A stretch of DNA of 64,000 nucleotides, from assembly GCA_907165135.1 (NCBI GenBank), contig OU015567.1, positions 11,966,001-12,030,000 of the forward strand, in the 5' to 3' direction. The translations under genes were made by a program, and so were the position numbers. Below are positions 1 to 64,000 of this stretch, piece after piece (the stretch's first letter is position 1; each line of letters opens with the position of its first letter). Origin of the DNA: Oikopleura dioica (Eukaryota > Animalia > Chordata). Under the pieces are notes generated by a model. The model saw nothing but the letters and a program-made list of their open reading frames with translations, did no database searches and was not told the DNA's origin.

Positions 1-3000
1 ACGCATAGCTGCTTCGTTAGTGGTAAGTTTACATTTCCATTTGCCGTTGTCAAGAGCTTGTGGAGCAACACAGCTGACAGTTTCGCGGCCACCATAAGTA
101 GCCATGCAAGTTCCTGGGACGACTTCCCAAATTCCGCTGTCCATATTACAGATAGCCATTGTGGAACCCTTTTCAAAAGTTATTTCAGAGAAGAGATGCG
201 TTTCATTTCTACCTGCATAACGTAACCATTGTTACAGGTGGCAGTACATCGCCTGAAACCGACAGAGTTGTAGTCCTCGTTCTTTTGGTTCTTTTTCTTC
301 TTTCCGCGCTCTTCTTCAACAGATCGTCGCTCAACAGTCCTGAAAATAAATTTATTTTGATCAAGTCATTCTTATCTTACTTGAGAGCTCGCTCGAATTC
401 TCCCTCTCGTCGTTCTCGGTTCTTTGGGTGATTGAAGCAAGCAATTCCATATTTCTCTGGATCACAAGGAGCTTCTTTGCACTTCATGTTCTTTTGAACT
501 TGGAGTGGATTCTTTCGGTTGTAATAAACACCATCTCTGCAGATGATGATAAGCTCTCCGTGCCATGGACGGAAGTTTTCTGCGCACTTGATCATGCAAA
601 GCACTTGGCCGCTTGAAGATTCTCGGCAATCCATAACACCACCCTTGACTTCATTGATAGCTGGAGAAAGCTCACAAGCGCCGGTAGCGCCGACAAGCGT
701 TTTTGGATCAGGAGTTGGAACAGTAAACTTAGGATTAGCAGTTGTCTTGACTGCCTCAACTGGTGCCTTTTCTTCTTCGCTGTCGTCACTTTCGGACTTC
801 ATGTAGTTAGTGTCGGCGGCGATGTAATCTTCGCATTCCACATTACCGTTGTCAAGAGAAGGAACATTCTGGCAAGTAGCGACTTCTGGGACACAGTTGG
901 TTGCTGGAATCTGCCAGATACCGTTGTTCTGATCACATCGTGCTTCCCATCGTCCGTTAGCGGGTCTAAATATTTTTACCACAAAAAAAAACAAAGAAAA
1001 GTGTTACCTGTAACCAGGGTTGCATCGAAGATTACATCTGAGGAGGCCATAATGGACATTACCGTAGCCAGCGTATTGATCTTCATCGCAGATGTAGTAA
1101 CCATAGTTGACCTGAGGTCGGTAACAGTATTTGTTTGCTGGGGGCTGTTTGTTGCAGAATGCAGCGGGTGGCTGAAGCCATTGCCCAGTAGGAACTCGGC
1201 AGACAGCAATGTACGAGCCGGAGAATGCATATCCATTATCGCAGTTTGCGAGGCAGACGTAGTTCTGTGGCTTGCCGTAGTTGTAAGAGCGGCTCATTTG
1301 CTTCTTGGAAAGCTTAGTATGTTTGTTTTCGAGCTGATCGCCAATGACTTGAACTTCATCGCTGTAATAATCAGCACCACTGATTTCTCGTCGTCTTCGG
1401 CCAATCTTTTTAGCTCCCTTTCGAGGTGGTGCTGGATCAGTCTTGATAGAATCCCAGTCCTCAGTTCGTGTTGTTGAAGATGGGTAAGGGGCATCATAAT
1501 CTTGGAGATAGCACTTCCACTGTCCATATGGAATGGGGGCAGGCTCTTTGCAATATTCTGGGTATGATGGAAGAGTCTTCACCTTGCAGCCGATCGGTTG
1601 AGGAGTAAAAGCACCAGAAGCATAGTTGCACTGGTAAGTTGTTCGATAAGGATCTCGTGGGACGAATCCGTCATAGCAATGAAGCGTGCATGAGGTTGTG
1701 TAAGCAGTCCCTTGTTTCTTGTAACCGCAACTGAGGTAACCACCGTTCACATACTTCTGATTACACATGGGGTTGTAGTGAGATTTAGAGCAGTGAGTTG
1801 GTGGACTGAGCCACTTTCCGGATGTCTCATCGCACTTAGCAACCCATCGTCCATTTTGCGGGGTGTAGCCAGGTGAGCAGTTCAAGTCACAAACTAAATG
1901 GCTAGAACTGTATCGACCCATAACAGCATTTGGTTCGGACCATGTGCTTCCAAAGTCCCCTTGATCATCGTGAGCGTCACTTACAAGCTCAGTTGTCTCT
2001 CGCCGTTTTCTACCATATGATGGTGGGTTGTAACCACCTTTCGAGTAGCCATAGCAAGATTGCTTGTAAACGGTAGGGTCACAATAACCAGGCTGGCAGT
2101 AGAAATTGTTGACGTAGAATTTACCGTTGGAGCATCCAGAGAATGTCTGGCTAGTGGCTGGTCGGTACCCGTTGCTGCACATAAGTTGACAGAAGTATCC
2201 GTATCCCTGCTTCTCGCAAGTGACGAAACCACCACTGACATTTGTTTTCAATGGACAAGTTCCGTAAACTTGGGCTGCTGGGTAAGTGGCCTTGATACCA
2301 TTACCGTAGTAGTAGGTATTTGGCTTTTCACTGTATGGTTTTGGCTCGCCATAAACCTTGGAGCATTTGTAAGAACCGTAGTTGGCATATGGCTGAGAAC
2401 ATTTTGTTGAGTACCCGTCGAACGCGTTACATTTTCCTGGTTTGGGGTACCAGAATCCAGTAGAAAGATCGCACATGGCCTTCGACGAGCCATATCCGTA
2501 GGTTCCGTCGTAACAAGTCAATGTACAGACGAGCATTTTTCTAGTGTTGTATTGCTCCCATCTGTTGGATCCTTCATCTGCATCATCGGAAACAGCTCGG
2601 AAACCATCAATATTGAAAGTATTATCAACAGCGATGTAGTCAGAGAACTCGTAATCGATTCCAGAGTCTCGGTCAGATTGTTCATCTTGATCAATGACTT
2701 CGCTGAAACCATGTTTGTCGACAGCTCGTCGTCGTCGGCCATAAGCTGGGGATTTTGGATAACTTGGAGCTCCATAAGCAGGCGGGCTTGGATAAGAGCT
2801 CGGGCTTGCATATCCAGATGGTTTGTAGCTATATGTTGGCTTGTAAGCGCCACCATATCCTCCAGAACTGTAGTATGATCCACCGACCTGTTCAACTCGG
2901 CAATACCACTGTCCGAAGGGATCTCGTGATGGAGGTTGACATTTGTAGTCCTGCTTGCAATAAGATGGTGGGATAACCCAAGTTCCGTCAACGCAAATTG

Positions 3001-6000
3001 ATACAGGCTGAACAGCCGTGTATCCAGGCTCGCATGTAAGAGAGCAAAGCATTTTCTTGCTGGCCATATCTTCCCATCTGTAACCGTCCATTGATTTGAG
3101 GCCCATGTTTTCCAGGCTATCTTCGAGAGATCGGAGATTTCCTTCGTAGGTGTCTTCGTTACCTTCCCAGACATCACCTCTCCATGGCGAAGCTTCCTTC
3201 TTCTTTTTAGGCTTTTCTTTTTGATCTTCTTCTTCTTCACCAGAGCCTTCAGTTTCGGTTTCGTTACCAGATCGACGCTTTCGGCCGGGATAAGGATTGT
3301 AGTACCCTCCAGGTTGTGGATAGGCACCACCATTGTAGCCACCATATGGTGTGTTTGGAATGGCTTGATAACCATTTGTCTGAACAGGCATCCATTCGTG
3401 CTCGTAGACACAAGTGTATTCTCCATGGGCAGGATTGTTTGGTTTGGCACATGGAGTGTACTTCTCGCATGTTGGTTCTTCGAACCAGTAGCCCTTTACA
3501 CACTTAGCATGACCACCACCAACGTAGAAGTTCTTGCAGTTGACATCGCAAACAGTGCATGTAGTCCAAACATTACCGTTGACGACTTTTTTGACTTCCT
3601 CGGTAATCTTGGTCAAAGGAGCGTCTCGTTTACAGCCCATGATAGACGGCGTGAAAGCACCAGTAGCGGAATTACATTCGAAATGGGTCTGTCCCTGTGG
3701 GTACGAATTCTTATCACAGATTAACTGACAGTAGGCAGTAGCTCCGGGTTGAGCAACGGGTTTAGCCGTCGAATATGTTCGAGCAAGGGATCGCTGAACA
3801 GATTCATCTTCATCAGAATCATAAAGAACCATCATGTCCTCATCAGCACTATCGAAACCAGAATCTCTGTATGATGGTTCGTCATCGCCTGATCCTTCTG
3901 CTTCTCGTCGACGTCGCTCTTCAGCGTCTTCATCTGCGTTCACAGTAACGTTGAAGCAAGAGTCACCAAATGTGTACTCATCACAGTATCCAGCAACACA
4001 AGAAAGCTGTTGGCTGATTTCACCGTCGGTGCAGGAGGCATACTGGTTCATTTGAGCCGGTGTATGATCAGCATCACATCTGAGTTTGCAGACGGAGCTC
4101 TCACCAACTTCTCGGCAGTCCAAATGTCCATTTGGCATAAGGATTTCAGCTTCGCATTCCTTCTTGGCTGTTAATCGCTGACCATAGTAGTTATTTTTAG
4201 CTGGTGCTCCTGGCTTGCCGTAGGTCATATCTCCATTAGAGGTATCGACGGCCTTGATGTAACCGTATGAAACTTGTTGCTTGTAAGTGTTGTACTTGCT
4301 AGAATCATAGCCTTTTCCATAATAAATTGGCTTTTCGTAGCCATGAACAGGGTTGTATGCACCAGATGCGTAACAGTGAATCCAACCGTATGAGACTCGT
4401 CGTCGAGACATGCAAGTTCCGAATCCAGAATATGTGACAGAATTTTTAGTGCTGCTTTGTTTCTTCTTTTGATTCTTTTTGATTTTGCCTCGTTCTTCGC
4501 CCAAGTCAGTTCGGCCGAATCGTGATTCTTCGTCTTGATCATCGTAGTCGATGTCTTCCATGTATGGTTCTGGTTCTCCAGCATCTTCACCTTCGTAAGA
4601 ATCAACTGGATCCATAACTGGGACACCATCAACGTATTTGAATGTCATGAAATCGCCATCTTCGTCGACCTCAACAGTTCCTTCGTATTCTTCATCTTCA
4701 GTCTCTCGTCGCTTTCGTCCCTTTTTGGTGCTTGAGTATGGTGAGTTAGCATATTGAGTTGAGGCAGCATATTGTCCGGGTGAAGGTCCACCGTAAGAAG
4801 CTCCTTCGTAGAATCGCTGTCCAGGCATCTTCTCTTGGTAAACAGCAAGTGGAGCCTGACATCGCTCTTTCTTGCAGTTAGTCATTTTTGCTTGTGAAAC
4901 TTTGTATTTTTCACATGGAGGTTCGTACTTGCAGCCCTGTGGTTCCTTTCCGATCCAGATACCACGCTTGCAGGAGAATTTCCAAGTGTCCGACCATTTG
5001 GCGGGGACAAATTGACCGTTGCCCTTGCATGTAAGCTGGCAAACTGTCATACCATCCTCTTCCCAGCAGTCGTACTTTGCATTTGGTTTTTCTGGCTTTT
5101 CACATTTGAGGTTCCATTCGCACTTGCACCACGAATCCCATTCGCCGGACTCAGCGTTGCATCGCATAGCTCCTGGTTGTTCTGGATCGTAGTATTCAAC
5201 CTCTTCTTCGTGTTGAATGGTCACTTGTCCGACAGTATTGTAGGGTTTATTTTCATACTTGACTGGAATCTTGTGATAGTCCGTTGATCCATAGGAAGTG
5301 CTATATCCACTTGTGGAGTGAGTTTGAGAATAGGAAACAGACTGAGAAGAAGATCCGACGTAAGACGCTCCGTATCCAGGCTTATAAGATCCAGCGTAAT
5401 TTGGCTTGTAAGATCCAGCATATTGGTTGGGATAAGCTTGTCGTCGACCTCTTCCTCCTTTAGATCCTCCCTTAGTGCTGGCAGGCGCTGTTTGGCACGA
5501 TCCTTGTTGGATAGCATAATTTTCATGACATTGAACCATGCAAACGTGGTTATCTGTAGTGATTGTGCTTCGTTTATTCTCTGTTTCCTCGATGATTCTC
5601 TGACATTCGACGTAAGCATTGTTGATTCTCGGTGGAACATCAAGACATCGAGTGTTGAAAATACAATGAACTTGATTCTCCCACTGTCCGTTGCAGTTAT
5701 CGCACTTGGATGTCAGGGAGATCATTGGGTTGTATCCTGCTGGATATTGCGAGGAATAGCCTTTGCCAGAAGAGTAGCTTCGACCGAAACCGTCAGTGCT
5801 ACTTCCGTCAGTATAGTCCTCGTCATATTCCCAGTAGTCATCACCTTCGGATCGTCTCTTTCGTCCGTAACTCGAGCCGTAGCTCTTATCACCATAGCTG
5901 CCTTCGTATCCGGCATTGACACCGACAGTGTGGAGATAGCTGCTAAACTCGCCCCAAGCGTCACCATGTCCCCAACAGGAAGCGCCGAATTTATCGGGAT

Positions 6001-8550
6001 CACAGGCGCCAGCGACGCAACCCCATGCGGTCTTCTTTTTAGGCATTGAAGGGAACATCTGGCCGTTTTCACAAGTAGCCTCAAGGAGAGCATCAGTAGA
6101 TGGCACGAATCCTTGATTACACATAACTCGGCATGTGTATGGTTTCTTCTCAGTCTTACATTGCCACCAACCATTGTCAAGTTCATGAATTGGCTTGCAT
6201 CGAGCACCCCCTTGTCCTTGCATTGGGTTGTAATTTGGTGGAGGAGCAAGTGCGGGAACAATTGGAGCACCGATGTAGAATCGTCGACATCGAAGGTTGC
6301 AAGTTCGGAATTTTCCGGCATCTTTGCAATCCCACTGACCTTGTCCTTGATCCCACCATGGTTCGTCTGGGCAGTGTCGCCAGTGATTGCACTTTCCTGG
6401 CTTGTAGTTCTCAAGCCAGACACCATTGATGCAAACCGCTCGCTGGGTTGTTGGGCTGTAGCAGTCGTTACAAGAGAGGACGCACTCTTTTTTGACAGAG
6501 AAGTTCCATTTTGACTTGTCAACTTCAGGCGCGTTTGGAACACCCCATTTCTTTCCACGGCCAACAATAGTTTGTTTTTCGTGGGAAAATGGATCGAAAT
6601 CTTCAACACCGGTGTAGAAGTCATCTGATTCGAGCTCAAAGAGGTCTTCAGATGACATTTCCTCGGTGCCGTTTGTTTCTCGACGTTTTCGAGCAAATTC
6701 ACCCTTTTCGAAGGAGTCCGTTCGGGTGTAACTGTAATCATCATCTTCTGGGATAGTCTGTTCCCAACACTGGAAGACACCATAAGGTGTGGAAGGAGTT
6801 CGGCATGGAGAAGAGTAAACACATTGAGTTGGTCCGGGGCTCCAGTATGACGTCTTGAGCGAACATTTTGCTTCTTTTTGGCCATTCTTTGGCTTGTGGA
6901 ATCGAGCGCAGAAGATTCGACAAGTAAGTTTTGCATCCCACCAGGCATAGTTAACAACGACGGTTGTCTGCTGGACATTTGTCACCTTGGTTGATGTCTG
7001 AGTGACCTTGACAGTAGTTTGGCCGCTGTAGCTATTTCCATAACCGCCTCCATAATATCCTCGGCCTGATACTTCCTCGCCTTGCGGTTCAGATTCATCT
7101 TCTCCCTCTCTTCGCTTTCGACCATATGGTGGGTTAGAATATGGCTTTCCGTAAGAGCTACCATAATTTTTGTTAGGGTACGCACTTCCATAATTGCTGC
7201 CGTATCCTCCGACGTAAGCAGATCCTGGTTGAGGAATGAGAGAGTGTCCCTGATCATAGTACCCAAGATTAAGAAGATTATCGTAGCACTGGTAGTAACC
7301 CATCGGGCCAGCAGATGGCCAGTAGCAATAATGCTCGAAATTGCAAGTTCCGATAGCCTTTTCAAACCATTTTCCGTCAGACAACGAGCACTGAGCTCTG
7401 TAACCAGCAGTTGCTCGATGGACAGGGTCACATTTTAGGTAACAGACGTAGCAAAGATCTGGACCGGGGTAACTGTAAGGGCTACCGACTTGGTAAGGAT
7501 CATTGTACCCTCTGTAGCTGTTTTCTTCAGTTTCATCGTCCCAGGCGCTTCGGTCTTGAGCCTCGTCTTCTTCTTCTCTTCGGCGTCGACCTTTATTCTG
7601 GTTGTTCTTCTTATTCTTTCGCTTCTTATCAGCTTCTGTATAAGCAGAAATGGGGATAGGACTCTTTTTGTAAGGATTTTTGCTGACGTATGCATTAGCT
7701 TGCTGCTTGTACTTGTTCACATACTGCTGATTGTATGGGGGAGCATTTGATGGTAAATATTGATCATACGGATCGTACTGCTGGCAAGGTTGAATTGAGC
7801 ATTGATAAGCATAGTTTTCTCCTCGTGGTGGATCTTGGCATTTATTCACAAATTCGCAATCGGAGTTTCCGTTCCATCTTCCTTCAGTGCATTCGAACTC
7901 ATTGACTCCAGTTCGCGAGAACCAGTATCTTGGGCATTTCAATGTACACTTTCGGTTATAAATATCTCCACTGCACGTGTATGATCCGTAGACAGCCGTT
8001 AAATCTGTACATTTTACGAGTTGCTTGCAGTAACCGCTTGCACTGTTGTACCAGAACCCAGTTTGAGAGTTACACTCGGCTGTGGCACTGCCGACAAGCT
8101 CCCAGCCGGGATGACAGGTGAGCGAACATTCCTTTACGTAGCCGTTGTAATTGACATATGCTCCTCTATCATCACCCTCTTCTTCGCCTTCTCGACGTTT
8201 TCGCGCGAGCTTTAATCGGCAAGTCCAGTAACCTCCCTTTGCTGGAGGAACAGCGCATTTTCCTGTGGCTTGTCCATAACCTGGCTGACTAACATATGTC
8301 CCCTGATTCTGATAACCTGGATTGGGCTTGTAATTGGAAGCCTGGTAGGTTTCCTTGTAGGGCTGCTTTTGATAAGGCTTCTGGTAGCCCGATTGATAGC
8401 TGGGACCGTAGTACCCACGGTCACTACCTTCTTCGGCGCCTGAAAATTTTAGTTTATTTTTTTTCTCTTTTAAAATCTTCTGATTGAAAGTCCTCTTATA
8501 GAAAGTCTCTTACCGTAAACGGCGGCGAAAACGGTGAGCAGTTGCTTCAT
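1..8550 (-). CDS. Large secreted Sushi/CCP-repeat polyprotein with multiple furin-type cleavage sites (oikosin/extracellular-matrix-like); 3' end runs off the window
   Basis: ATG at 8550 (MKQLLTVFAAVY, signal-peptide-like). GT-AG introns at 8513-8440, 1007-966, 380-340 and 212-169. Exon 8439-1008 is one open frame containing the 2312-aa track ORF. Repeated 6-Cys modules C..P....G.W.C / C.L.C..GY.P....A.C....G.W.....C and about 13 R-x-[RK]-R sites. Confidence 0.9.
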
Positions 8551-8980
8551 GACCCGACCGTCCGGTTCCGAATGAGAAAAAACCTACTGAGCATAAGAGC
8601 AATTGTTTACCGACCAGTGCGCTCCAAAATAGAGGTTCCAAAAACTGCGAACTGGTAGTCGATAATTTTGGTCATTTTGTTTAGGCCAGGCGACCACATC
8701 GCATCAGAGTTTTCCAGCAAGACGTAAGAGTCCCTTATTTATTTGATATCATGCACCGCGAAAAATCCCGCTTTTCTGATATTTTGTTACATTCTTAATT
8801 GGCAAAATGGAGTTACCCGCTGAAGATTTAATCAATATCAAAAATTTTCATCAATTATTTTTATTGCCCTTCTTTCATGTTCAAAATTAAAGACTATTCG
8901 TGGAGGGAGGAGTCATCTGTTGTCTCTTGCAAAAGCGCGCTGCGGTCATACCACACGTCAGAAAAACTTTATTTCCGAAA

Positions 8981-11900
8981 ATGGGAGAATATAACTGCTC
9001 TCAATGCAATAAATCTTTCCGTTCGGAGAGAGCCTTGAAATTTCATGCAGAAAATCATGCTGATGAAAAATCGGACAGAGAATGGGCCTCTCGGCGAGAA
9101 AGATCGAGAAGCAGAATCAGAGAATTGAGCGCCTCGAGAGACTCCTTAGGAACTGATCTACGAATTTTCTGATGATTTTTTTGTCAAAAACGAGCTCATT
9201 TGTGGATACAGTTGTAGAAAAAGATGCTTATCAAGCAGGAGAAAGGGGTGGAAGAACTGCGCGTCGAGATCTGGGGCTTGGTGCTGGACTTAGCAAAAAT
9301 CTCGCAAGCTTGGATCAGAAGACAAAAACCTGTGGAGAGCCTGGTAATCCTTTATATAATTATATGGTACATGGATAAGAATATTACTGCCTCTATATCT
9401 TATTGACAATCAAGGTTGTGGGAGAACCTTCTCCACAAAAGTAATGCTCGACTTTCACATGGACAGGGAGCATAATAAGAAGCAAGACGGAGCGCTCGAA
9501 ACTGATCGGCATAAATTGTCAGCTTCATATGATAGAAAACACAGTCTTCCTCCATCTGGTAAAAGTGAAAGGAGCTCAATGCTTTCGATGAGCAAAGAAG
9601 AATTCATCGATCAAGGAAAAAGTTTGCCTGCGATGATTGCGGTCAGCGCTTCGTCTCCGAGCGTGCTAAAAACGTGCATGAAAGCACGATGCACGCAGAC
9701 AAAGCAGAGCCAAGTGAAAAATGCAACAAGTGCGGAAAAATGTTCAAATCTGCGCGTGCTTTGAGAACTCACTTGGATATTTTTCATGGAAATGATGCCG
9801 GGGATGAGGATGATTTCAAATGCTCGATTTGTAACAAAACTTATTCTTCGCAAAGATCACTCAATGCGCATATGTCTTCTCATGGCAGAGACGCTGATCA
9901 AAGGAAAAGTTACCAGAATTTTATTCTAGAGAAACCATAACAGTTAACATTTACTTACTCGTTCGAATTAAATAGTAACTGACGTCGTGGAGAGTTAAAA
10001 AAGAGCTGAAAATCGACTTGCCTCCTCGAAGATCTCTATTAAATAGAGTCTATTTTATGTCAAAATAAATTAACTTTTTGAAGCAACGCACCTTCCGGGT
10101 ACTCATCAACACGGGGATCAAGATGGTCCAGCTTTCAAGCAAAAGATGCAGAAACCGAGAACGACCGAGTCTACAACGTCAAAATGCCAACTTTTATCAA
10201 CGATCGTTTGAAAAAAGAAAACGAGACGGAAAAGAAATCACTTCTCGACAAGGCACCATATGTGGTCAATACTGACATTAAAAGTATCTTCTGCAAGTAT
10301 TGCAATGAAGCTTTCTACACAGAAAGAGCAGTAGAAATGCATATAACATTGGCGCACGATGGAGATGTTGATCGAGCGAAGAGAAGAAAAGCGAGAAAAT
10401 TTGAAGAAGCAGAAAAAATGGAGATCGCTGAGGAAGAAGAAGATCTTGTCAATACTTTCAAGTGCGACGAGTACCCTTGTAAAAGGAAATTCCCCACCTG
10501 GCACGGCCTGAAAATCCATCTCAAATCTTCTCATAAATACACGACTGCAGATTTTGCTCTCAATTGCGACACTTGCGGTAGAAAGTTCACGACAAAGAAC
10601 TCTCTCGAAAATCACATCGAAAATACGCACTATTTGAAGTGCCAGGAGTGCGACGAAAAATTCCAGGAGAATCATCAGCTCGAAGCCCATATTAGAAGAC
10701 GCCATAACAAGCAGGTCAATAAATGTGACCAGTGCGGTCGGGAGTTTAGAAGCGCTGAAACTCTAAGACTCCATATGGAAATTCATAAGAAGCCGGAGTT
10801 CGACTGTCTGAAATGCAAACGACAGTTTATGACAAAAGGGGAACTGGACTTCCATATCATGGAGCACGAAAACGACGAAAAGATGAAGAAACTGAAAGAA
10901 GAACAAGAAGCTGCGGCGAACTCGAAAAAGTGGTTTTGCGATAATCCCAAGTGCAACAAAAGCTTTCTGACCGAGAAGTCATTTAAAATGCACATGGACA
11001 TGCATGCTGCGGAAGAAGATGTGAGGAAAGAATGTCCGAAGTGCCATAAAACATTTATGACGGAGAAGAGCTTGAACTTTCACATCGAGAACTTTCACCC
11101 AGACGTTGACTTGGATCAAGTTGAACTCGATAGATCCAAAGGCGTGAACTCCTACGAGCAAGAATACAAAAAAGATGGCTGGAAATGCGACGAATGCCAC
11201 CGCTTCTTCGATTCCAAGCAGATCTACGAGTACCATATGCAACGTCACGCAAACACCTTCAAATGCACCGAATGCAAGGCAAAATTCAAGACAAAGCAAG
11301 GGCTCGAAATGCACGTAGAAGAAGAACACAGACGTAAATCTGTCGAGCTTCATATGTGCAAGATCTGCTCAAAGGAGTTCGAAAGCGCGGCGATGTTGAA
11401 GTTCCATGAAACAACTGCTCATGAAAGTCAACACGATTTTGAATGTGAAAAGTGCGGAAAAATTTTGTCAAGTGAAAGTGGCTTAGAAATGCACATGGAA
11501 ACGCATGAATTTCTTGAATCGATGGAAATCAAATGCCCGGTAAAAATCAATCTAAAACGGATATACGGAAAAAGCAATTTTATAGGAATGTGGCAAGAAG
11601 TTCTCAACTGAACGTAATCTGGAGCTTCATATGGAGTCTTATCATCGAGAAGAAGTCATTATAAAGGTAGCGTAGAAAGAATACTCGTTGTCAATTCTTG
11701 TAGTGTCTGTATTGCGATCGTCAATTTGACTCTGATGCTACGATCGGAATTCATATGAAACACAACCACCCTGCGGAATATAAACAGCAACAGCGAATGC
11801 GACAGCAGGAAAACATCAACTCAGCTCCGGTTAAACAGCGGCTCAAGTGTCCATATGAAGACTGCGACGCAACCTTCAAATCTGAAAATACGCTTAATCT

Positions 11901-13315
11901 ACATGTCAACAATGCGCATGGCTTTGAAGACATGGAAGAGTTCAGGTGAGCCTTTTTGGAATCATTGATTTCTAAGTCGAATTTTAGCGCGAGAATGAAT
12001 GCAATGACGAAGAATCGAATTCAAGAAACACTCGAGGATTTTGATCTCGATATGCCAAAACCAACTCGTCGAGCAGCTCCAGAACCAGAGCCTGAACCAG
12101 AACCAAGGAAATACAGATGCGAAGAATGCGGAAGCAACTTTAGCTCTGAGCGCACTTATAAGCAGCATATGGAATATATTCATCCAAAGGTTTGATTTTA
12201 TGAAAAAGATTTTCTGTGAACTACTTTCTTAGGAGGAAACGAAACCAGAACCAGCCTGGAAATGCGAGGAGTGCGGAAAGACCTTTAGAATCGAAGCGGG
12301 CTACAATCTTCACATGTCAAATCATAAGCAAGAGAAAGAACAGTCAAGCTACAGCTGCGAGCATTGTGAAATGACATTCGATTCTGATCGCCAGCTCTCT
12401 CGTCACAGCAGAGCTTGCGCCGCCAAGGATAGAAAAGATGCCCAAGAAGAAGCTCAGCGAATCAGGTAATACTTTTTTATCCGCTTGATTTCATCAACTC
12501 TCAGATCGCGCTATGAGACAGCAAGAGAGCCAGAAGAAGAACCTGAGCCAGTTCAAACTCGCAAGTCTTCACGGTACACGATTCCGGACGATTCTCCCGA
12601 GCCAATTAGGAAGAGTTCAGTTGCACCAACCATTACAGACGATGATGAAGACGATTATCGACCAGCTTCGCCCCAATTTGCATGTGACCTCTGCAAGGAA
12701 CAGTTTAATTTAAAACAAATTTCTATTCGCGAATATTCTTTGAACTGTGAAAAGCAAAAATTCTTGTCAGAAATGATGGTCAAGTACCACGACTGCCCGG
12801 AGAAAAAAGATGAGCCCGACGAATTCAAATGCGACAAATGTGGTAAAACATACTGGTCGGAAAAGATGCTCAAGATTCATGCTCGCACGCACATTAGCTT
12901 CGATGATGACGTCGACGGTGTTGATGAGGGCATTTTGAACATGAAGATTGAAATGCCTGCTATCAAGAAATCAATCAGGAACGGGGTTAAAATCATGTTT
13001 CAAGCTTCAAAAGCAGGCTAAAATCAACCCTTAAAAGCACGGCTAATGACGACGAAGATGAGCTCACATGTGATCAATGCGATCAAACCTTCTCATCTTC
13101 AATTCTCCTGCGAATCCACAAGAGAGCGCACGAACGCGAGCACCTCTACGACGACGGTGAACTTTTGTCCGCGAAAAAACTTGACGATAATGACGACGAT
13201 GAGGCAGGAGCTCCTAAGACTTCTGTTCAAGAACTTTTGTAATTATGTTCTAAATTCTCAAAAATATATTCTCAACGCATTTTTTACTTTCAGAAAACGA
13301 GAATTTTCTAACTGA
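8981..13315 (+). CDS. Multi-exon C2H2 zinc-finger protein (possibly more than one gene)
   Basis: MGEYNCSQCNKSFRSERALKFHAENH at 8981. Many C-x2/4-C-x12-H-x3/5-H fingers in ORFs 9674-9940, 10184-11611, 11755-12195 and 12485-13021, joined by short GT-AG and GA-AG introns. 3' end approximate. Confidence 0.85.
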
Positions 13316-30370: not shown

Positions 30371-33300
30371 CTAGTCAGCAAGCTGGCAAAGTACCGCAGC
30401 GCCTCTGTTAATCCAGTGCGCTGGCTCTTTCTTAGTTGGTAGATGCATCGGTACGACAAAGTTCGTTGAGTGCCCAGTTGTTGATAGAACACCCTGACGC
30501 AATCCTTCTTTGTACAAAGGACAGATGTAGTCTGCCTTGTCGGGCGTGAAGTCCATTTCTGGCACCATCATGAAGACGGGCACGGGCGTGTTCATCACTC
30601 CAAGGTCGCTTTCTGTCATGCACATTTCATTGTCGTCCCATTTCCACGCGTCGGTGAAGATTCCGTGAACAAGAGCGCCATCTTCTGGGTCTGCGATTTC
30701 GTCGTCTTCTGGGCACGTGCCATCGTTTGCATCTAGAAAACTCGTAAAATTTGGTTTGGTGGGGTGAAGAATATACCTAAAATATCTTGGTAGGTAGCCT
30801 GATCGCGATATCTCTGTGTCATCGTAAACTTGAAACTCAGATGATCAATTGGCAAGTCGTACTTTCTCGCGTGTGTTTGAAGCAAACCAGTGAGGAAACC
30901 CTGAGTATAGAAGAATCCAGAGATCCAGAAGGTCTTGCACGTTCCCAACTCGATCCATCTCTTGGTGAAGATTAACCGAAGACGCAAATCGTTGACCCAG
31001 GATGAGAGAGGCTTCAAAGATGGATACGCGGCCTACAATCAATTAAAAAAAGGCAAAGGGGTTAAATTTTTACCTTTCTGTAAAGGTCCGGCACTTGATT
31101 ATTCAAGAAGGCGATAAAGATTGACTCCATTTCTTCGTTCATAACGACCAAACCCGCAATCGCCTTTTTCAACGTCTCAAGTGACGTTTTGATAACTCGC
31201 TGAAGCTTGGCAAATCTTTCGACTTCCTGCTTCAAGACCGTCGTCATACTGTACTCTCGTCCTTTGTGATCCAGCTCGAAGAGTTCTCGTTTTCCCTCTT
31301 CGATGTCGAGCACAACATCGATTTTTTCCAGAATGCTCTCAGCCATGGCCATGACCTTGTCATCATCGGATGAGCCACCGCTGCCGCCACTTGACCTAGG
31401 CTGCAAGTCAAGAATCGTTCCCACAATCGCCTGCGTTTCCTGACGCAAGAACGCCAAGTTAGCATTTTCGTGCATGCCAAATACAACTGGCTCGTCTGTA
31501 AGTGGAAGCTGCTCAATGTAATCCTGGAAGCTCTTGAGGGTATCGCCTGCTGGCGCGTAGTAAACTGATGATCCGGAGAACTTGTAGTTGAGATCAAGAG
31601 TTTTTGGTGCGAAGAAACGGACCAAAATGGCGTCAAGACATCGCTGATCCCAGGCATCAGTAACTCGGCCACCATAAGTGATCATTCCTAAATTGAATGT
31701 ATAAGACAAGTATTTTTAATCATTTAATATTAAAACTGATAAATTTCAATAAATAAGTCAGCAAAAATTAATCTCTTTACCTGTAATGTAAGTAAGAGCA
31801 TCCCATGGAATCTTGCCACCCTTACAGAAGAGGTCCAAGTTTAGAAGGCAGCATTCACGATCAGAATCGTTAAATTCATACTTGATGTTCCATCCCAGAG
31901 GTCCAAACTTCTTTCGTTCTTGCAAGATTGCATGGAAGAAGCACAAGCTGAATACAATACGTCTCCAGTCGAGTTTTAGCTCGTGACTTTCGAAATGCGC
32001 CGCGTCGATTTCTGCAAGCGCTCGTCGAACGTTTGCGCGCAGACCCTTTGGCGGCTCGTTGGTGACTTTGACCGAGGATTGGAGGACAGAGACTGGGAAG
32101 TAATTCGCCGGCATGGCCGAGAGGTACAGTCTGAAGTCCTTGTTCAGCGTGACGCCGGGCTCGTTGAAGCCCTTGACGATTTCCTCGAGACGGGGAAGCC
32201 ACGACTTGGCCAAGTGACAATTCTGAAGGAAAACCCAGTCGCCGTTTTTCGTCGCGGATGTAATCAAACGCTCAGCCACGGGCCCTTGACCTTGACCGAG
32301 TGAGATGGCGTGGACTCGCTCTAAATAATTGCTCTCAGAAGCGAATCGCTGGAAAGCGCCCATAGGATCTGAGCCAGCTGAGAGGACGAAGACCAAGGGG
32401 CTTGAGGGAGTCATGTTAGCGTAAAGATCGCCAATGGAAACTGGTGGATTTTCGACAAATGGCTTTCCGATGTTGAGAATGACAAAATCTTGAATTGCAG
32501 TCACGACTCGTTCATCAGCGAAGAACTTGAGAAGCATGAGCTTTGCGAAACTTGATAGTCGATCATTCCAGTGGCCGATAATTTCTGGCTCTTCTTCTTC
32601 CTCTACAGGAGATTTTCCAGGCAAAGGGGGTGGAGTTTCATGTGAGTATGCGTGTTCGCCTTTAGGTGGGTTCAATCGCAGCTCGTTGCCGCCGAGGATG
32701 ATATGAATCGGCGTGCGTGTCACGTCGGCTTTGAGCCCCTTGAATATCTCGGGTTGCTCGTCTTCCAGGTCCACGATTTTGTTCCACGTATCTTCTGTAA
32801 GTCCAGCTATGCCTGTGGGCATAGAAGGCCGTTCTTTCTCAAGTGGAGGAAGACCACGGAGGAAGAGAAGCCACTGATCGTCTGGGATAACTCCACGCAT
32901 TCTCAGAATATCCACACACATCATGAATGAGAACATCAACTTATGCCGTTCAAATAGACCTCTGGAAACGTTTTGATAAATTGCCATTGAGCAAACATCA
33001 ATCAGTTGCCTCAGGCGTGCTTCGAGATCATCTTTTTTCGGCGCAGTGGAGATGGTATTGTTGAAAATATCCGTAAAGTATTTGAGCGAGAACTGGTACA
33101 TAGGATCGACGTTTCCGAGCGCTGCGACGACAAAATAGAGTACTGAGCCGCGGTTTGCAACCGGACGGTACTTTTCTCGTGCTTCCGAAATGGAAGCCTC
33201 AGTCTTTTCGGCTTCCTGCATTCTGTTGTTAATGACGCCAGAGGTAACCTTGGAATCGGCCAGCGTGTTGATAAGTGCCTCATTGTCCAATATATTGCCT

Positions 33301-36300
33301 TCGGAAGTGAAGAGGAGGTGCAGGATTTTGTCTTCAATGCCACCGAGCTGTTCTTTATCGGCATTGATCTTGACGACAAGTTGCGTACGCGTTTCCTCCA
33401 AATCCGGTCGTTCCAAACGCACAACGTCAGCAAGGACTTGGTCCTCCAAACCACTTAGGGTGACGGTAAAGTTAATGATCGTGACTTTGATGCAAATCTC
33501 TGGCAAGTAGTGAGGGTTGGACATCTTGGTGGTCATGTAAAAACGGAAGTTCTTGTCGTAATCGATGTCACTGTCACCAAGTCGAATAAGTGTTCGACCG
33601 CCAGATACAAAAGTCTGTTTGAGTAAAATTGGCTCAAGAGCGGGATCAAGAGTTTCTTCAATTTCTTCAAGCAGGACTGGTTGACCAATTCGAATAGCAT
33701 TTTCAAGAGTTCGCAAGAAGGTAGAATCAGAAAGTTTGATGACCTTCAAGCCGTTCTTTTGCTCCTTTGATCGGATCCATCTGTTGGCTTGATCCTGAGG
33801 ATCGATCATCAATGGCCATCGACGAGCTCGAGTAACCAAAAGAGCATTTTCTGTTGAGACATCGTCTCGTGGCAAGCCTTCCGTATTCCATTGTCTAATT
33901 TCATAAGGGTCACCAAGGATGGAAGCAAGTGAGAGTGTTTTAGAAGTGGGAATTCCAAGTTCGATGCACTTATCTTTCCAGGTGTCGATAAGACGTACTC
34001 GATATTCGGAGGTGAAGGCACCGTAGTAAGAAACACACGCCGCGGCGATAAAGACATCTCCCACAACGTTGCCGATAAGCTCATCGTACATGATCACATT
34101 CTCACCCCATCGAACTTGTTCATCGGCCAAGGCGGTTGTTAATTTGGCCGCACGCTTCAATCGCGCTTCTGTGAGTGCCATTTGTTCCATCAACGAGTTT
34201 TTCTCGTTAACAGAGGCTTCGAAAGATGCCTCAAGACCGGCGATTTTATCTTTGACTTCTTGGAGCTGAGCCTGTTTCTGCGCCAAACCTTCCATGACGA
34301 TTTTGAGTTCGGCCTGAGCGTTAGCGAGTTTTTGTCGCTTTGGCTCGACTTCTCGGATCACACGTGAGTAGACATCCATCGCTCGAACCCACATGCACAT
34401 AGAAGTGCAGGCTTTGGAAACTTTCGCGACTTTCTCGGGAACAAACTCTGGGTTCTCGATGTATTTCTTGAGCTTCTTTGTTAACGACATTGGGATGTTG
34501 TCCTTGTCGTAAGTCATGAGCTTGTTCAAGAATTGAGAGTCACCAAGAACGTTCTTTGCGCTCTTCCAATCTGTCTTAGCACCCATCAGAATACACACAG
34601 CCTCCATGACGGTCTGGACCATTTCTGGTGGAGTAGTGAAAACTCGCAACTCGGAGATGTCAGATTTATCAAGAGAGTTAAGCGCATCGTTAGCAGCTTC
34701 AAGAGCTGGCAGAGCTTCATCAAGATCTCGTTGGGCGTCGTCTGCGATCGCTTGAGTCTCCGTCTTTTTAATCATTGCGGCTGCTTCTTCAGCAGAAACG
34801 ACCTCTTCAACTTGACGAGCCGCGACTTTATCTCGGTCCAAGTCAATCATCAGCGCTTCAGTCGCCGCTGATTTCTCCTTTAAGACTGGTTCCAATTCTG
34901 TCAAATGTGCTTTCATATCGTCGATAATCTTGTTGGTTGATTGAATCTTCTCGAGACCCGTTTTGTATCGATCTCGAGCAAGGACGAGCTTCTTTCTTTT
35001 GTCTGACAGCATCGAAAGGTAGACGTTGATAAGTTCAAGATAAGAAGTCGGCGTGGTGTAGTACCTTCTGCGCAAAGCGTTGAAGAAGTCTTCTGCGGTT
35101 TCGGTGACCGAAGTGTGAATTTCCACGCACATCAATGAAAGGGGCTCTTTGAGTTCTTCGGGTATCTCATCTTCCACAGTTGAGAAGAAAGTGCGCGACA
35201 CTGACAAGAGTGCATCTCGAGGCCACTGGACGAACCAATCGATCGTACAGCAGTTGACTAACGAAGGGAACATTCGACATCTATTTCGGAAAGCAGAGCC
35301 AACTGGTGACATACAAAGAACGACGTGAAGCTTTTCTCGGACTCTGTTGATCAAAAATTGCCAAACAACATCTCGGTTACCTTCATTCAGTCCAGCTTCC
35401 TTGGCTAAGGGACGTGCAAGACCCATGATCTGCTCAAGCTCATCCTTCTCAAAGAGGTTGGGAACTTCACCGGAGTTGAGGATATTGTTGATGTCTTCCA
35501 GGAATTCTTCGACAACAATTTGTGTGTCTGTAAAAAGGAATACAGTATCGTTTTGAACAGCAAGTTTGTATAACTTTCGCAAGTCTTCGTGAAAGGCTTC
35601 GATTCCGTAGCCTCGAGTCAACTCAATCTGGAAGCAATTGTAGCCGCACATGTGAGCAGCAAGACGGGTTAGTGATTGTTTACCAGTACCACCAACACCG
35701 ACGAGCAAGGCATTTCCTCGTTCAGTTGTAATCATTCGTACAATTCGTGTAACGTGATGAATGGCGTCAGTGAAGAAGACGAGCTTCATTTCTTTAGACG
35801 AATTGAGATTGTAATCGTCGAGGTAGTCTTCCATCACGGTCTTTACTTTTTCGCCGAAGTCAGTCAGATCGTCGTAAACTCGATCGGCTTTTTCAATACC
35901 AGGCTTCATGAAATCGCCAAAGATGTACGGTTTTTCGAGGTATTTTTCAAGGTCCACTTCTTGTCGGAAATGTTTTCCAGCAACATCAAGCAACATCGAG
36001 TTGAAGTAGTCCTTATCTTCGTGGTCGATGAGACGATCATGGAAGACTCGGCTGGTTTCGTGGCAGAAAAGTCGGAAGATACCGGCTTCATCTCGGACAA
36101 CAGCTGGGTCAGCTCGAAGCATACCCTGAATGACCTTGGACAAATCTCGTAAGTTGAAAACGTAGTGTGACTTAGATGGAGTTGGAAGTAAATCTTCCTT
36201 GATTTTTGCGTAGATGTCGATAGCAGCTTGGACAGCGCCGGTTGACATTCCTCTGACATTTGGCGCAAAATCTTGAAGGAAACCGCCAAGAATAGACGAG

Positions 36301-39300
36301 AAGATGGTCTTAAGAGCTGTATCAGATGGAGATGGGATGGAGAACATAGCAAAATGACGGATCATTCTCGGCGAAACTGGATTTCGTCCACCACCAGGAG
36401 GAGCACATGCAGAGCAGAGAATGACATTTTCAATGTCTTTCCAGAACATTTTTTCGCGATCGTAGAGGCCACCGAAATCTTGGTACTGCCGAAGAAGTTC
36501 AATTGGTGGTTGAGAGCCGTAAGTGTCCAACTTGGGCATGTTAAGATCGTCAACGAAAACGACAATCTTCTTTCCGATCGGAGCGCCGAGGAGGTTTTTA
36601 CGCTTCTTTTCAAGCTTGCCTTCGATCATTTCTTGCGTTCGAGCGGATGATGTTTGAGCAGAGAAGCCAATGAAGACTGGGTTGAAATCTTTTTCGATGA
36701 GGCTCTCTAGTTGAGCTCTGGCGACGACGGATTTACCGACACCAGTCAAGCCGGTAAAGAGGACAGAATGATTCATCGTTAGGAGTTTTTCCATGATGAA
36801 CCCAAATCGAACGGTATCTACGGTTGGCACGAGAATATCGAAAAACGCAGCGCTTGGATCGTATTTGAAAACAGGGAGGATCTTTTCCCATCCTTCGAAT
36901 CGGCCCATAGATGGCTCCATATAGAATGAGAAAACATCGCCAGATTGAGGAAGTCTGATGTCATTGTTTTCTTCCATTTGTTCGCGGATAAAAGTGTCAA
37001 ACGATTCCCAACCAGATTCGTTGAGGTTTCCAGCGACGGCCCAAACGTACGCAAAAGCGAAGATTCCGCCAAGAGTCTTTGTCGCATTTGCTGGATCAGC
37101 TGCCAGCTTAGGAGCTTTGGGATCCTTTACGACAGATTCAATCAAAGAGCAGAGGGTCGCCACTTTAGCTTGGTTGACTTGGAGCATCATCTGAATAATA
37201 AGTTAAGCTAGTAAATCGTCGCTGCGTCAGGGACTCATTAAATCGAGAAAGGGACAAAAGGACATTTTCGGTTTTCGTTTTTACGATAGTTGCCTTATAC
37301 AATTCCCCTCTATGTCGTCGTCAATTGAATGAATAGAGATCATATTTGCCTGGGAAGTAATCGGTGAATAGACTTCTGACTGGCACTCGCAGACGAAAAT
37401 TTAGAGACGAGGTAAATTTTATTACTTGGATTTTTACCCATCTTTTACCTCGGGACTTTCTAGGAGAGAGCGCAGACTCTTTTCAATAAAAATCACTTGA
37501 CCGAATGATTTTTTTCATAGAAAACATTTTTGAGCGGCACTCTGAGACGCGACAGTAATTAGTGATTTCAAGAGCATTGAGCTAGAACGGCTAGGACAAA
37601 AGACGGCTCATCTCTCATAAAAACATTCTTGATGTTTGTTTGACCACTTCTCCCGCTACCCTTATTTCAATTTTAGCTACGTTCGAGTCTTCCTCTTCCG
37701 CGCCCTTTTTTGGCAGTTGGCTTTGTTTGAGAACGAGACGATTAAAAAAAAAAGAGAACGAATGGAAAGAATTTAACAAAAAGTCTTGAAAAGAGAAGAA
37801 AGATAAAAATGGTTCTTTCAAAAGAAGCCAAAATTGGGATTATCGTCGGCTCGATAGCTGGCTTCATTGTTATCACATTAGTTATTTGGTGGATATGTTA
37901 TGTAAGTTAAAAATAGTGGTTAAAAATATTGACGATAATTAAAAGGTCCGAAGAAAGCGCAAAAAAGCGGGTGAATATCGGCCCGAGAGAATGGAGCGTG
38001 CCCAGATTCAGGTGAACACAATCACAAGTTCTGGCAACGTCGAGCGTCTGATTTGACCCTGCTTTCGTCATTCGTTCTTTAAGTATTTTAAATTTTATCT
38101 GCATATATACCGCTCTATATAAATCTGCACAATCAAATAAACTGACACCAGCATTCCATGAAAACATGCGTGACACCCCTTTTATCGGTGGGTTTCTCAA
38201 ATATAAGAATAGTTCAAATTTGCATAGCCTCGGATTGTCAGAGCAACGAAGCGCTTGGGGCCAAAAAATTTTAACGTGCATACGAAAAGCTTTATTTTTT
38301 AAACGATGGCTTTCGGCTTTTTAAAATGCTGTACAAAGGAGCAAAAACCGGTCGATCCTGCAGAAAACGCCGCGCAAGAGAACCCAGCACTTCAAGAAGG
38401 ATCTGAAGCTCCTGAGCTAAAACTTCCGCCGAAAGAAAAACTCATCTAATTTCAATTCAAAAATGAGCATGAATAAATTCCTTCAACTCTTAAAACAGCT
38501 GCTTTTAAGCAAGAAAATAGGCGCGATGAGTAGTAAAAATGACTCGACGGATATTTGCGAAGCAAATTTGTATAGCTTTGAGATGTGAAAGAGAGATGGA
38601 AGCTATTAACGTCAGCGAGGAGAAATATTTTTGACAGGCTATTCTCCCCTATTCTCCCAATATTTTGCAACCTTATCAATGCCCAATAGGTCCCACGAAA
38701 ATGTCCTGTTTAAATTTTAATACCTGTTTGCAGTTTTTGCTAACAAATCGGAGGCCATCCTCGACATAAGCATCGAACAAATCAGACAGGAAATCTTTCA
38801 TAAGAGGCGTTACCAACTCGTTGTCAAGTCCTTCAAGCCACGTTCGCATGTACGGCCTCCATCCGAGATCGTTAGAGTCAATGTAGACCATACCACAGCG
38901 AGATACAGTGGCAGGTGAGGCGACAGCAAGATCTTGCACTTCGAAAACCATGTGGATTTCGGCGGAAAGTTTGATACGTTCAGAGTTGGCAAGACACAAC
39001 ATCTTGTTATCATCCAAGACAGTGTTCATGTTTTCAATCCAGAGGGCGTCGACCGGACCGTCGCAGATGATCCACTTATGATCGTCATTATAAGTTGAGG
39101 ATGCTTGTCGCACACACTTCGCCATGAGACCGTCTTTCCATTCCATCGTGAGTGGATCTTCTTCACCGTACAGCTCACCCATTGTGATTGACTTTGGATT
39201 CATAACCATCAGGGTAACTGGTTGATACTGAGGATTCTTCTGGCCTTTCTTTTTCAGAGTTTCGAGGGTATCAGCAAGGATTCGATAGACTGTAGTTTTT

Positions 39301-62800: not shown

Positions 62801-64000
62801 TATTACGCCAGCTTAAAAGAAAGGCATTTTGAGGTAAAGAAGAAGGATCGTAACAGAGATAAATTTTTGAATATTTGGCAAAAACTCTATTATTTTTGAG
62901 AATTCGAAAAATTAAGTAATATCGTCTTTCAGCCATGATATCTTCAGTGGTAAAATGATCTGGGAAATATGATTCAAAACAATTTTGTTCTGACCTTGGT
63001 TTCCTTCCTTGAGAGACATCCATATATTCTTTATAGATGTCCTTTAGAGTTTCTTTTTTCTGAGAAAGCCAAGTCAGTTGAGAAAAGAAATAAGTGGCAG
63101 TATGAAATACTTCTTTATAATTGCGACTTTCTATGCAATTCATATGCCAATCAGTATTCAGCTTGTCTATGATTTTTAATATCCTCGCTCTTCGAATTGC
63201 CTGCGATCGTTCATCTTCAGAATGACCCCCTGAATTTGAGAATTGCCTATGGATTCTTTGTAGATCTTCTTCAGATGAATTACTCTCCATATTCTCCTTT
63301 TTTTCCTTAAAATGAAATCTTTTTGAAGGTGTTAAAATCAACAATTATTTTATATTTGCAAAAATGAACACCCTAAAAGGCTTTTGTCCGCAGCACAATG
63401 TTTTATGGGATGATCTTACCTGTAAAGAACACGTCTATTTCTTCTCCAAACTGAAAGGATATCCCGCAGCGCAAATCGATGATGAAATCAAAAGTCTCTT
63501 GAAGCGAACTGGACTCACTCAAAAAGCTAATAATCTGGTTCCGAGTTTGTCTGGTGGTATGAAGCGGAAACTCTCTGTCGCGCTTGCTTTTTGCGGAGGT
63601 TCGAAGGTAAACATTCGGCCAGTCCGCTTCAAATTTTCGGAATCAATAGAGGCGTCAATAGCCTGATTGATTACTGTCATACAATACGATTATCTTCGCA
63701 TGAATCATTTTTAGGTTGTTTTATTAGACGAGCCGACTGCTGGCGTCGATCCTTATGCCCGACGTGGAATTTGGGACTTGCTCTTGAGCTACAAGAAAGG
63801 CAAGACTGTCATTCTATCAACACATCATATGGACGAAGCTGAAATTCTCGGGGACAGAATTGCGGTCATTTCTGATGGACAACTTCAATGCGTTGGCTCT
63901 TCTTTGTGGATGAAACGAACTTTTGGAAAAGGATACCTGATCACGGTAAACACCCCAGACAGGAAATCTGTATCGGAACTGGTGTCAAATATATCGCCGG
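59869..64000 (+). CDS. ABCA: ABCA-subfamily transporter (N-terminal half; runs off the window)
   Basis: [20 protein letters not shown] with [17 protein letters not shown], Walker [39 protein letters not shown] and STHHMDEA. Confidence 0.97.
62160..63290 (-). CDS. Intronless orphan ORF (about 376 aa) antisense inside an ABCA intron
   Basis: Uninterrupted frame 63344-62160, first ATG at 63290 (MESNSSEED..), AT-rich with F/Y/N/I-rich product. Lies in intron 62123-63379. Confidence 0.7.
   Translation of the reverse strand: MESNSSEEDLQRIHRQFSNSGGHSEDERSQAIRRARILKIIDKLNTDWHMNCIESRNYKEVFHTATYFFSQLTWLSQKKETLKDIYKEYMDVSQGRKPRSEQNCFESYFPDHFTTEDIMAERRYYLIFRILKNNRVFAKYSKIYLCYDPSSLPQNAFLLSWRNILFGLLLIGYYQVSNERPSQSDESSLLSFFKRHEDSRIRSPLAFVRFTPIYENLKRSGQTLIKPTEYVNIINFNYEFNNYNGQNFLAYFELMRNFREHFDTFRNQDNPFAKQFLPFHVNTSYVFKIFNFLPSAYSFMLCLMRILCPIEHDIHQFIALEDNSFPDFYEIFNDKYTFLGYMKAIFVELFNFSETEFDTHLKFPLSKDYDIAFRGK

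Follow-up and report, generated by a model that had tools for sequence, protein, structure and literature searches.

An Oikopleura dioica Sushi Polyprotein with Putative Activation Cassettes inside Split and Nested Modules

Introduction

Larvaceans store a compact house rudiment that is inflated within minutes, several times a day, and to our knowledge the protein chemistry timing this inflation is largely unknown. A minus-strand gene at one end of a 64,000-nt stretch of the Oikopleura dioica genome (assembly GCA_907165135.1, contig OU015567.1, forward-strand positions 11,966,001 to 12,030,000; hereafter the window) raises the question of whether a secreted protein may carry protease triggers inside its own disulphide-bonded modules. 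The gene encodes a long chain of six-Cys Sushi/CCP modules whose loops are interrupted by cassettes of constant order: a basic site, an acidic spacer and a single Arg. A first reading, made from the letters alone (the sequence-only reading), had proposed that the spacers are excised while the module halves stay linked, unmasking cationic Tyr-rich arms. We lean, with reservations, towards a precursor of extracellular material, secreted and then cut by a convertase and a trypsin-like enzyme, which would strip acidic shields from a chain that remains tied by disulphides and assembles.

Materials and Methods

Database searches were made exon by exon; the joined spliced model was used for numbering, counting and pairwise comparison. 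The signal peptide was assessed by eye and by conservation. In the motifs below, a slash marks a putative cut.

Results

Gene Structure and Transcript

The gene runs from position 8550 past window position 1, with 2,783 codons without a stop inside the window. The coding sequence that the sequence-only reading had placed in 1-8550 was thus confirmed, and the gene extends beyond it. Its introns are GT-AG, of 74, 42, 41 and 44 nt, and delimit the following exons:

8514..8550, minus strand: exon 1, a 13-residue signal-like peptide whose final codon is interrupted by intron 1; CBY40984.1 / FN656209.1 agrees in both start and intron
1008..8439, minus strand: exon 2, 7.4 kb and 2,477 open codons, with the bulk of the modules and 12 cassettes
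381..965, minus strand: exon 3, splice junctions joined in transcript contig L004
213..339, minus strand: exon 4, junctions joined in L004
1..168, minus strand: exon 5, which leaves the window; about 610 more residues follow, judged against the orthologue P0002

With the P0002 portion added to the window part, the full protein would have about 3,394 residues (380 kDa). CBY40984.1, an unnamed, partial product from Norwegian O. dioica, matches the gene in start and first intron; the window accordingly belongs to a divergent lineage of O. dioica. The intron-free contig L004, from a marine sample and 77% identical at the nucleotide level, has the last three junctions spliced; at its 3' end a stop codon is followed by a poly(A) signal, and the transcript is assembled nearly whole. 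At about position 4310 of L004 a one-base frameshift within an A run causes the transcript to be called as two genes; it is probably an assembly error. A scan for the locus returned two loci only.

Upstream, non-coding conservation continues:

8551..8790, minus strand: non-coding block, 83% identical over 389 nt (exon 1 included) to a Norwegian O. dioica scaffold

To judge from this alignment, the block is a probable promoter and 5' untranslated region. A further upstream non-coding block, at 8906-8997, is 75% identical to the Norwegian scaffold.

Sushi Modules and Predicted Fold

Within the window we count 21 complete six-Cys modules of the selectin Sushi type, drawn from a table of 22 N-terminal halves (Cys1-Cys2) and 21 C-terminal halves (Cys3-x3-Cys4, Cys5, Cys6); inter-module linkers measure 5-11 residues. 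The six Cys are invariant in all 64 aligned modules from the window protein and its relatives, and the Cys2-Cys3 loop ranges from 8 to 124 residues. A profile of these 64 modules finds as its best PDB match E-selectin (4c16), with both SCRs covered and the six Cys in register (E 5e-10), while a PDB profile search with the N-terminal third gives CCP matches only, all weak. The Pfam Sushi scan that had been suggested earlier succeeds module by module, PF00084 matching 17/64 modules at E<=0.01, but a scan of the entire exon 2 yields no Sushi match; annotation missed the protein because Pfam scores nothing on its whole length. The Atlas feature search returns Sushi (score 0.95).

Local hidden Markov models (HMMs) of half-modules recover the split halves only in part, and the module parse therefore rests on Cys spacing, alignments and models. 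One model covers the first module:

8027..8257, minus strand: module 1, a six-Cys CCP interrupted by cassette 1

Its halves are predicted with a pLDDT (predicted local distance difference test) of 85-94, and the cassette (about 52) forms a loop between two strands. The model aligns with CCP domains along its whole length (Z 6.2; beta2-GPI, E-selectin), placing the cassette inside the module and not between modules. In the fold search, the best-ranked matches of our models are all CCP domains at Z 6.2-6.5, middling values that are expected at 60 residues. Two models, with inserts of 30 and 150 residues, support the view that split modules would refold as one CCP. Cys spacing, profile, Pfam and predicted fold together support the assignment to six-Cys, selectin-type Sushi/CCP modules, and with the gene model they bear out the secreted Sushi chain of the sequence-only reading.

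Two extra Cys, at 6463 and 5695 (minus strand), stand outside the six-Cys pattern and are kept in 4/4 aligned lineages. They may pair together or link molecules.

Cassettes of Basic Site, Acidic Spacer and Single Arg

R-x-[RK]-R is the furin/convertase consensus. Fourteen such clusters were observed, against 0.69 in shuffled sequence (maximum 4 in 2,000 shuffles); five relatives have a like excess, amounting to 20-fold over chance across six sequences. The 13 sites of the sequence-only reading are all real and fall within about 10 nt of where it had put them. The fourteenth cluster, RCRR at 6292, was rejected as a cleavage site, as it belongs to a module core and is not conserved. Cassettes thus number 13 in the window and 14 with the portion beyond it. 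Each starts at the higher coordinate of its range:

8417..8437, minus strand: N-terminal acidic mini-propeptide, an acidic heptapeptide with Asp-Arg/Gly-Tyr-Tyr, without a furin site and outside the modules
8165..8203, minus strand: cassette 1, RKRR, 9-residue spacer, net charge -5, DDR/GAY; Cys2-Cys3 loop
7511..7588, minus strand: cassette 2, 22 residues, -9, SYR/GYN; Cys2-Cys3 loop, flanked by an extra Cys pair
7061..7120, minus strand: cassette 3, 16 residues, -6, SGR/GYY
6557..6691, minus strand: cassette 4, 41 residues, -11, VGR/GKK
5780..5863, minus strand: cassette 5, 24 residues, -8, FGR/SYS; Cys4-Cys5 loop
5441..5452, minus strand: site 6, RGRR; Cys4-Cys5 loop; acidic spacer missing in O. 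dioica only, present in P0001, P0018, P0021 and P0022
4490..4717, minus strand: cassette 7, 72 residues, -26, FGR then EER/GKI
3779..3916, minus strand: cassette 8, 42 residues, -12, LAR/TYS
3077..3283, minus strand: cassette 9, 65 residues, -9, GYR/WED; retains the Trp of distant orthologues
2561..2737, minus strand: cassette 10, 55 residues, -12, SNR/WEQ; conserved aromatic motif in the spacer
1913..2011, minus strand: cassette 11, 29 residues, -6, MGR/YSS
1289..1399, minus strand: cassette 12, 33 residues, -1, MSR/SYN
306..418, minus strand: cassette 13, RERR, 20 residues, -2, EER/GKK; spans intron 3

The cassettes had all been assigned to the Cys2-Cys3 loop. This holds for 11/13; the sites at 5863 and 5452 lie in the Cys4-Cys5 loop, and none falls in an inter-module linker. 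Likewise, 12/13 sites are followed by the expected net-acidic spacer, of 9-72 residues and ending in a single Arg, the exception being 5452. The order of elements is constant. Exposed sites that are above chance and conserved, together with a signal peptide, are the sequence characteristics of a convertase precursor.

After the single Arg, the predicted new ends begin with Trp in two cassettes, carry Tyr within three residues in seven and are Gly-Lys in three. The N-terminal motif is a copy of the cassette's second half; P0018, P0027 and P0047 have Lys/Trp-Gly there. Gly directly precedes the basic run at 9/13 sites (P 3e-7), and at 7/13 in P0018. Among the orthologous sites, some consist simply of Gly-Lys-Arg, the usual amidation signal. 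The spacers sum to a net charge of -121, and their removal would shift the window part from -16 to +44. The arms, composed of Tyr 15, Gly 13, Ser 12, Pro 9 and Lys 9%, range in charge from -6 to +8 upstream and from -2 to +7 downstream. Spacers 9, 10 and 11 are not random filler, because their aromatic/acidic motifs are conserved across 6-8 orthologues, down to 30% identity. DNA tandem repeats were ruled out as the origin of the cassettes, as one 24-nt repeat only was found.

Nested Modules

Although the general layout of a stereotyped cassette stands, it does not always fill its loop alone: four cassettes are preceded by a whole module and a two-Cys mini-loop, and these four intact modules sit within loops of other modules.

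5975..6199, minus strand: N1, made up of an intact CCP and a two-Cys mini-loop; its host is the module that starts at 6373, in whose Cys4-Cys5 loop it lies, a nesting deduced from Cys bookkeeping; Pfam Sushi score 22.2 bits against a cut-off of 20.7
3467..4915, minus strand: doubly nested block, an outer module (Cys 4915 to 3469) with cassette 7 plus a middle module (4414 to 3634)
3956..4156, minus strand: N2, from the Cys table and half-module HMMs
2054..2257, minus strand: N3, within the module spanning Cys 2401 to 1792, from alignment and model
437..676, minus strand: N4, from the Cys table and half-module HMMs

The middle module of the doubly nested block contains N2 and cassette 8, and from the balanced Cys1-2 and Cys3-6 halves we infer two levels of nesting there. 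N3 is cleanly missing from P0018, P0030 and P0056; in the alignment, their two outer halves stand on either side of a simple cassette. Residues 1-211 of the 1580-2413 model form one CCP, with 57-60 aligned residues around a 150-residue insert (Z 6.5 to factor H and 6.4 to E-selectin; mean pLDDT only 53, ordered parts 60-70). Alignment and model thus support the joining of the outer halves around N3 into one predicted CCP. Conversely, the module before this one holds a nested unit in P0018 but not in the window protein; that unit and the second unit of P0018 are 84% identical. A tree of uninterrupted modules is poorly resolved as to one origin of the nested units.

Relatives and Conservation

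All orthologues found come from marine material (genomes, metagenomes and transcript assemblies); the remaining matches are generic Sushi proteins without cassettes. Identity to the window protein is 89% for P0002, 41% for P0001, 39% for P0020 and 30% for P0003/P0018, with about 20 fragments besides, and the cassettes are retained in orthologues of several marine lineages (30-50% identity). The common signal-peptide intron and the compact genes suggest that the orthologues come from other larvaceans.

The single Arg proposed as a second cleavage site received its clearest backing from P0018, in which 14/14 polybasic loops end in Gly, Ala, Asp or Tyr followed by Arg/Trp and 13 spacers are net-acidic. 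Arg-Trp occurs 16 times there, against 4 expected, at about 7 to 23 residues from the next Cys. It is a linear site, because its distance to Cys varies and because the motif stands at the N-terminus too. Between O. dioica lineages, P1 Arg is identical in 11/11 and the furin residues in 49/52 cases, with identities of 84% in spacers, 80-86% in arms and 92-93% in cores. Across lineages, spacers fall to 28-39% and share no common sequence, whereas cores keep 46-58%.

The arms vary by lineage. They are Tyr-rich in the window protein and in P0022/P0040, His/Gly-rich in P0001/P0020/P0021 and short in P0018/P0030; His makes up 9-10% of the entire protein in P0001/P0020. The cationic Tyr-rich arms of the sequence-only reading therefore apply in part: most cassettes of the window protein have Tyr-rich arms, but not all, and these are mildly cationic and replaced elsewhere by His-rich ones (P0001/P0020) or nearly absent (P0018). 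As read from the alignments, the conserved feature is the second site with its predicted aromatic new end, the cationic Tyr arm being lineage-specific.

Several observations on the relatives stand apart. The transcript-derived paralogue P0044/P0059 (L011, L012) has six-Cys modules whose loops carry acidic stretches ending in Arg/Trp or Arg/Lys-rich sequence, without furin sites. In P0001, at residues 318-352 and 2095-2120, an acidic stretch lies upstream of the polybasic site, after a single Asp-Arg, which amounts to a flipped or doubled cassette order. Beyond the window, residues 1345-1697 of P0002 contain, besides a long Lys-rich tract and acidic Asp-Arg motifs, a stretch of Thr/Pro/Ala and divergent Sushi-like modules without a Pfam match. 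The C-terminal 240 residues of P0002 are labelled Sushi-like by Atlas (score 0.90); a search with them found only the protein itself, a length-limited result and hence no proof of absence.

Neighbouring Genes

A cluster of C2H2 zinc-finger coding exons (9170-13020, plus strand) lies head to head with the Sushi-polyprotein gene. A large gene at 31062-43497 (minus strand) is, we presume from its translation, an axonemal dynein heavy chain. Further on are a HEAT-repeat protein exon (57900-58628, minus strand) and ABCA-type transporter exons (59869-62154, plus strand). Opposite and just after an ABCA-type exon that appears unfinished lies an intronless 394-residue open reading frame (62160-63344, minus strand), Phe/Tyr-rich and without a Pfam match, which is possibly nested in a transporter intron.

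Discussion

How might such a chain work? We infer cleavage, amidation, assembly and cross-linking as follows. Within the secretory pathway, a convertase would very probably open every loop; the Gly ahead of the basic run would give an even chance of amidating the upstream arm. A trypsin-like protease preferring a small residue before Arg would then probably remove the acidic spacer. Each N-terminus bared in this way would have an aromatic residue among its first three, predicted as Trp followed by Gly or Ser in distant lineages and as Gly or Ser followed by Tyr in the window protein. Selectin-type Sushi modules pair Cys1-5, 2-3 and 4-6; if the modules pair likewise, two disulphides span any cut made in one or the other loop, and about 15 chains would therefore remain one covalent string, as the sequence-only reading had foreseen for the module halves. 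Whether the spacers act as shields, keeping the precursor soluble in the granule until their loss frees the ends and the Tyr/Gly/Ser/Pro/Lys or His/Gly arms to bind, followed by peroxidase or metal cross-links, we rate as evenly balanced. The end product would be a house, filter or feeding-mucus matrix; that it is the house itself is plausible but falls somewhat short of even odds. More tentative still is the fullest version, a larvacean-specific multi-trigger matrix precursor in which 14-15 modules carry internal activation peptides. Two protease classes would expose its aromatic knobs and amidated arms, these would polymerise the chain into fibres of the house or the filter, and module insertion into loops, up to two levels deep, would enlarge the gene.

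The house proteome contains CCP proteins; its peroxidases (oik21) and its trypsin-like domains, in oik24g,h, speak for the shielded precursor (PMC3390340). Among the oikosins, which often have short signal peptides, oik17a, oik23 and some of oik35-43 carry CCP modules (Hosp et al. 2012, PMC3390340).

Several findings nevertheless weigh against the shielded precursor. P2 of the second site is Asp/Glu/Asn in 4/12 window cassettes, and P1' varies in O. dioica. Spacer loss in P0018 changes the net charge from -12 to 0 only, and the conserved product would therefore be the aromatic new end more than positive charge. Conserved aromatic motifs in several spacers suggest that these may stay bound; such motifs fit shields packed on the module and also fit spacers that remain attached. 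The structural models use alignments constructed around the Cys pattern, and the prediction gives no disulphide list. None of the 80 catalogued oikosins fits, by size and annotation tables or by seven primers (7-10 mismatches), and these tables hold no oikosin near 380 kDa with CCP repeats (PMC3390340). Hosp et al. 2012 (PMC3390340) do not mention furin, nor does a single-cell preprint (bioRxiv 10.64898/2026.03.31.715263) mention the gene. The house proteome could have overlooked the protein if it is cross-linked or was mis-modelled.

One alternative, though we think it unlikely, supposes a convertase cut only, after which the spacers stay as free N-terminal tails binding calcium, water or cationic partners, with Arg-Trp or Arg-Gly-Tyr as a binding motif and not a cut site. 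The motifs in spacers 9, 10 and 11 agree with it, spacer conservation is not below arm conservation, and the paralogue P0044 has its acidic-Arg/Trp stretches without any furin site. Yet even the N-terminal copy of the motif comes after an acidic stretch, and its Arg gives way there to Lys, as a trypsin-type P1 would allow; P2 is mostly Gly/Ala, and spacer length varies from 5 to 72 residues. Alternatively, the CCP string would be the carrier of a peptide precursor, its released spacers (with amidatable Gly-Arg ends) or tethered cationic arms being signals or antimicrobials. Gly-Arg ends 8/14 spacers in P0018 and 4/12 in the window protein, Gly precedes basic runs, and acidic-spacer polyproteins are typical of such precursors. 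We consider this improbable: the spacers share no sequence or motif and diverge more across lineages than the cores, the arms are not releasable because each ends on a bonded Cys, and one lineage is nearly without them. Only acidic spacers could be released, and these are not the repeated, similar peptides of such precursors.

Equally improbable, in our judgement, is a granule-packing or defence clot protein, densely stored and no part of house or filter, that would gel once released, whether at a wound, in the gut lining or on the egg surface. Larvaceans are not known to have clotting cells, and the mechanism would equal that of the shielded precursor, the site alone differing. The idea draws on coagulogen, likewise granule-stored and polymerising after proteolysis (PMC2873049), on regulated-pathway signals in the sequence and on the lack of a match in the house proteome list by size, annotation and seven primers. 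Finally, the loops might be a neutral expansion of the hypervariable CCP loop in an ordinary, uncut Sushi-repeat matrix protein. The Cys2-Cys3 loop does tolerate insertions over its whole length range, and the arms are low-complexity and lineage-variable, but the 20-fold site excess, the conservation of site positions at 30% identity and the constant order of elements make this highly improbable.

A precursor with fourteen built-in shields would be a direct candidate trigger for house inflation. Wherever the protein acts, the CCP fold appears to tolerate splitting by 150 (modelled) to about 440 residues (deduced) and to accommodate entire modules in its loops, and lineages have exchanged Tyr, His and Trp chemistry on a common scaffold. 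Such modules with swapped arm chemistry would be useful for the study of domain evolution and for designed protease-triggered materials.

Comparison with Known Systems

Oikosins resemble the window protein in being secreted O. dioica proteins, some with CCP modules. Selectin-type Sushi modules, as in the E-selectin SCRs, SVEP1 and SRPX, have the same six-Cys spacing and fold (Z 6.2-6.4, root mean square deviation 2.3-2.6 over 56-60 residues), but their Cys2-Cys3 loop has about 12 residues, no cleavage site and no nesting. IL-2 receptor alpha, in which two Sushi domains exchange strands, likewise builds a Sushi fold from a discontinuous chain, and module 1 was aligned to 2erj_A residues 3-165; it differs in having neither a protease site nor a full module inside a loop.

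Convertase cuts within a disulphide-bridged chain are familiar from proinsulin and complement C3/C5; the peptide that comes after the tetrabasic site of C3 ends in Leu-Ala-Arg. In these proteins there is one event per molecule, a hormone or effector product and no per-module repetition. Fibrinogen suggests a parallel for the second cut: acidic peptides cut off at a single Arg expose short N-termini that drive assembly. Its peptides are terminal, however, with two kinds per half-molecule on a coiled-coil and globular fold, in contrast to 14-15 internal cassettes; fibrinogen-type domains (coiled coil, FReD) have no Pfam match in our protein, and the new ends are unlike the Gly-Pro/His-Arg knob.

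Horseshoe crab coagulogen loses a peptide from within its chain through cuts at Leu-Gly-Arg and Ser-Gly-Arg while two chains stay disulphide-linked, and these cut sites are close to the LGR and SGR second sites of the window protein. It too is a stored precursor that polymerises once cut by a protease (PMC2873049, PMC5302069). Coagulogen differs as a small cystine-knot protein with one excised peptide and one enzyme for both cuts; PDB sequence and fold searches gave no homology, and the likeness is one of analogy only. Similarly, the Tyr/DOPA- and His/Gly-rich proteins of mussel byssus, worm jaw and squid beak are alike in arm composition only, without homology.

Our literature searches, with most subscription journals outside their coverage, found nothing on CBY40984.1 and no paper with this architecture, in keeping with the sequence-only reading, which had not recognised it among described Sushi proteins. 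Each component, like the logic of the trigger, has precedents in other systems; we know of none for repeating them within CCP modules that are split and nested, in a layout conserved in distant relatives.

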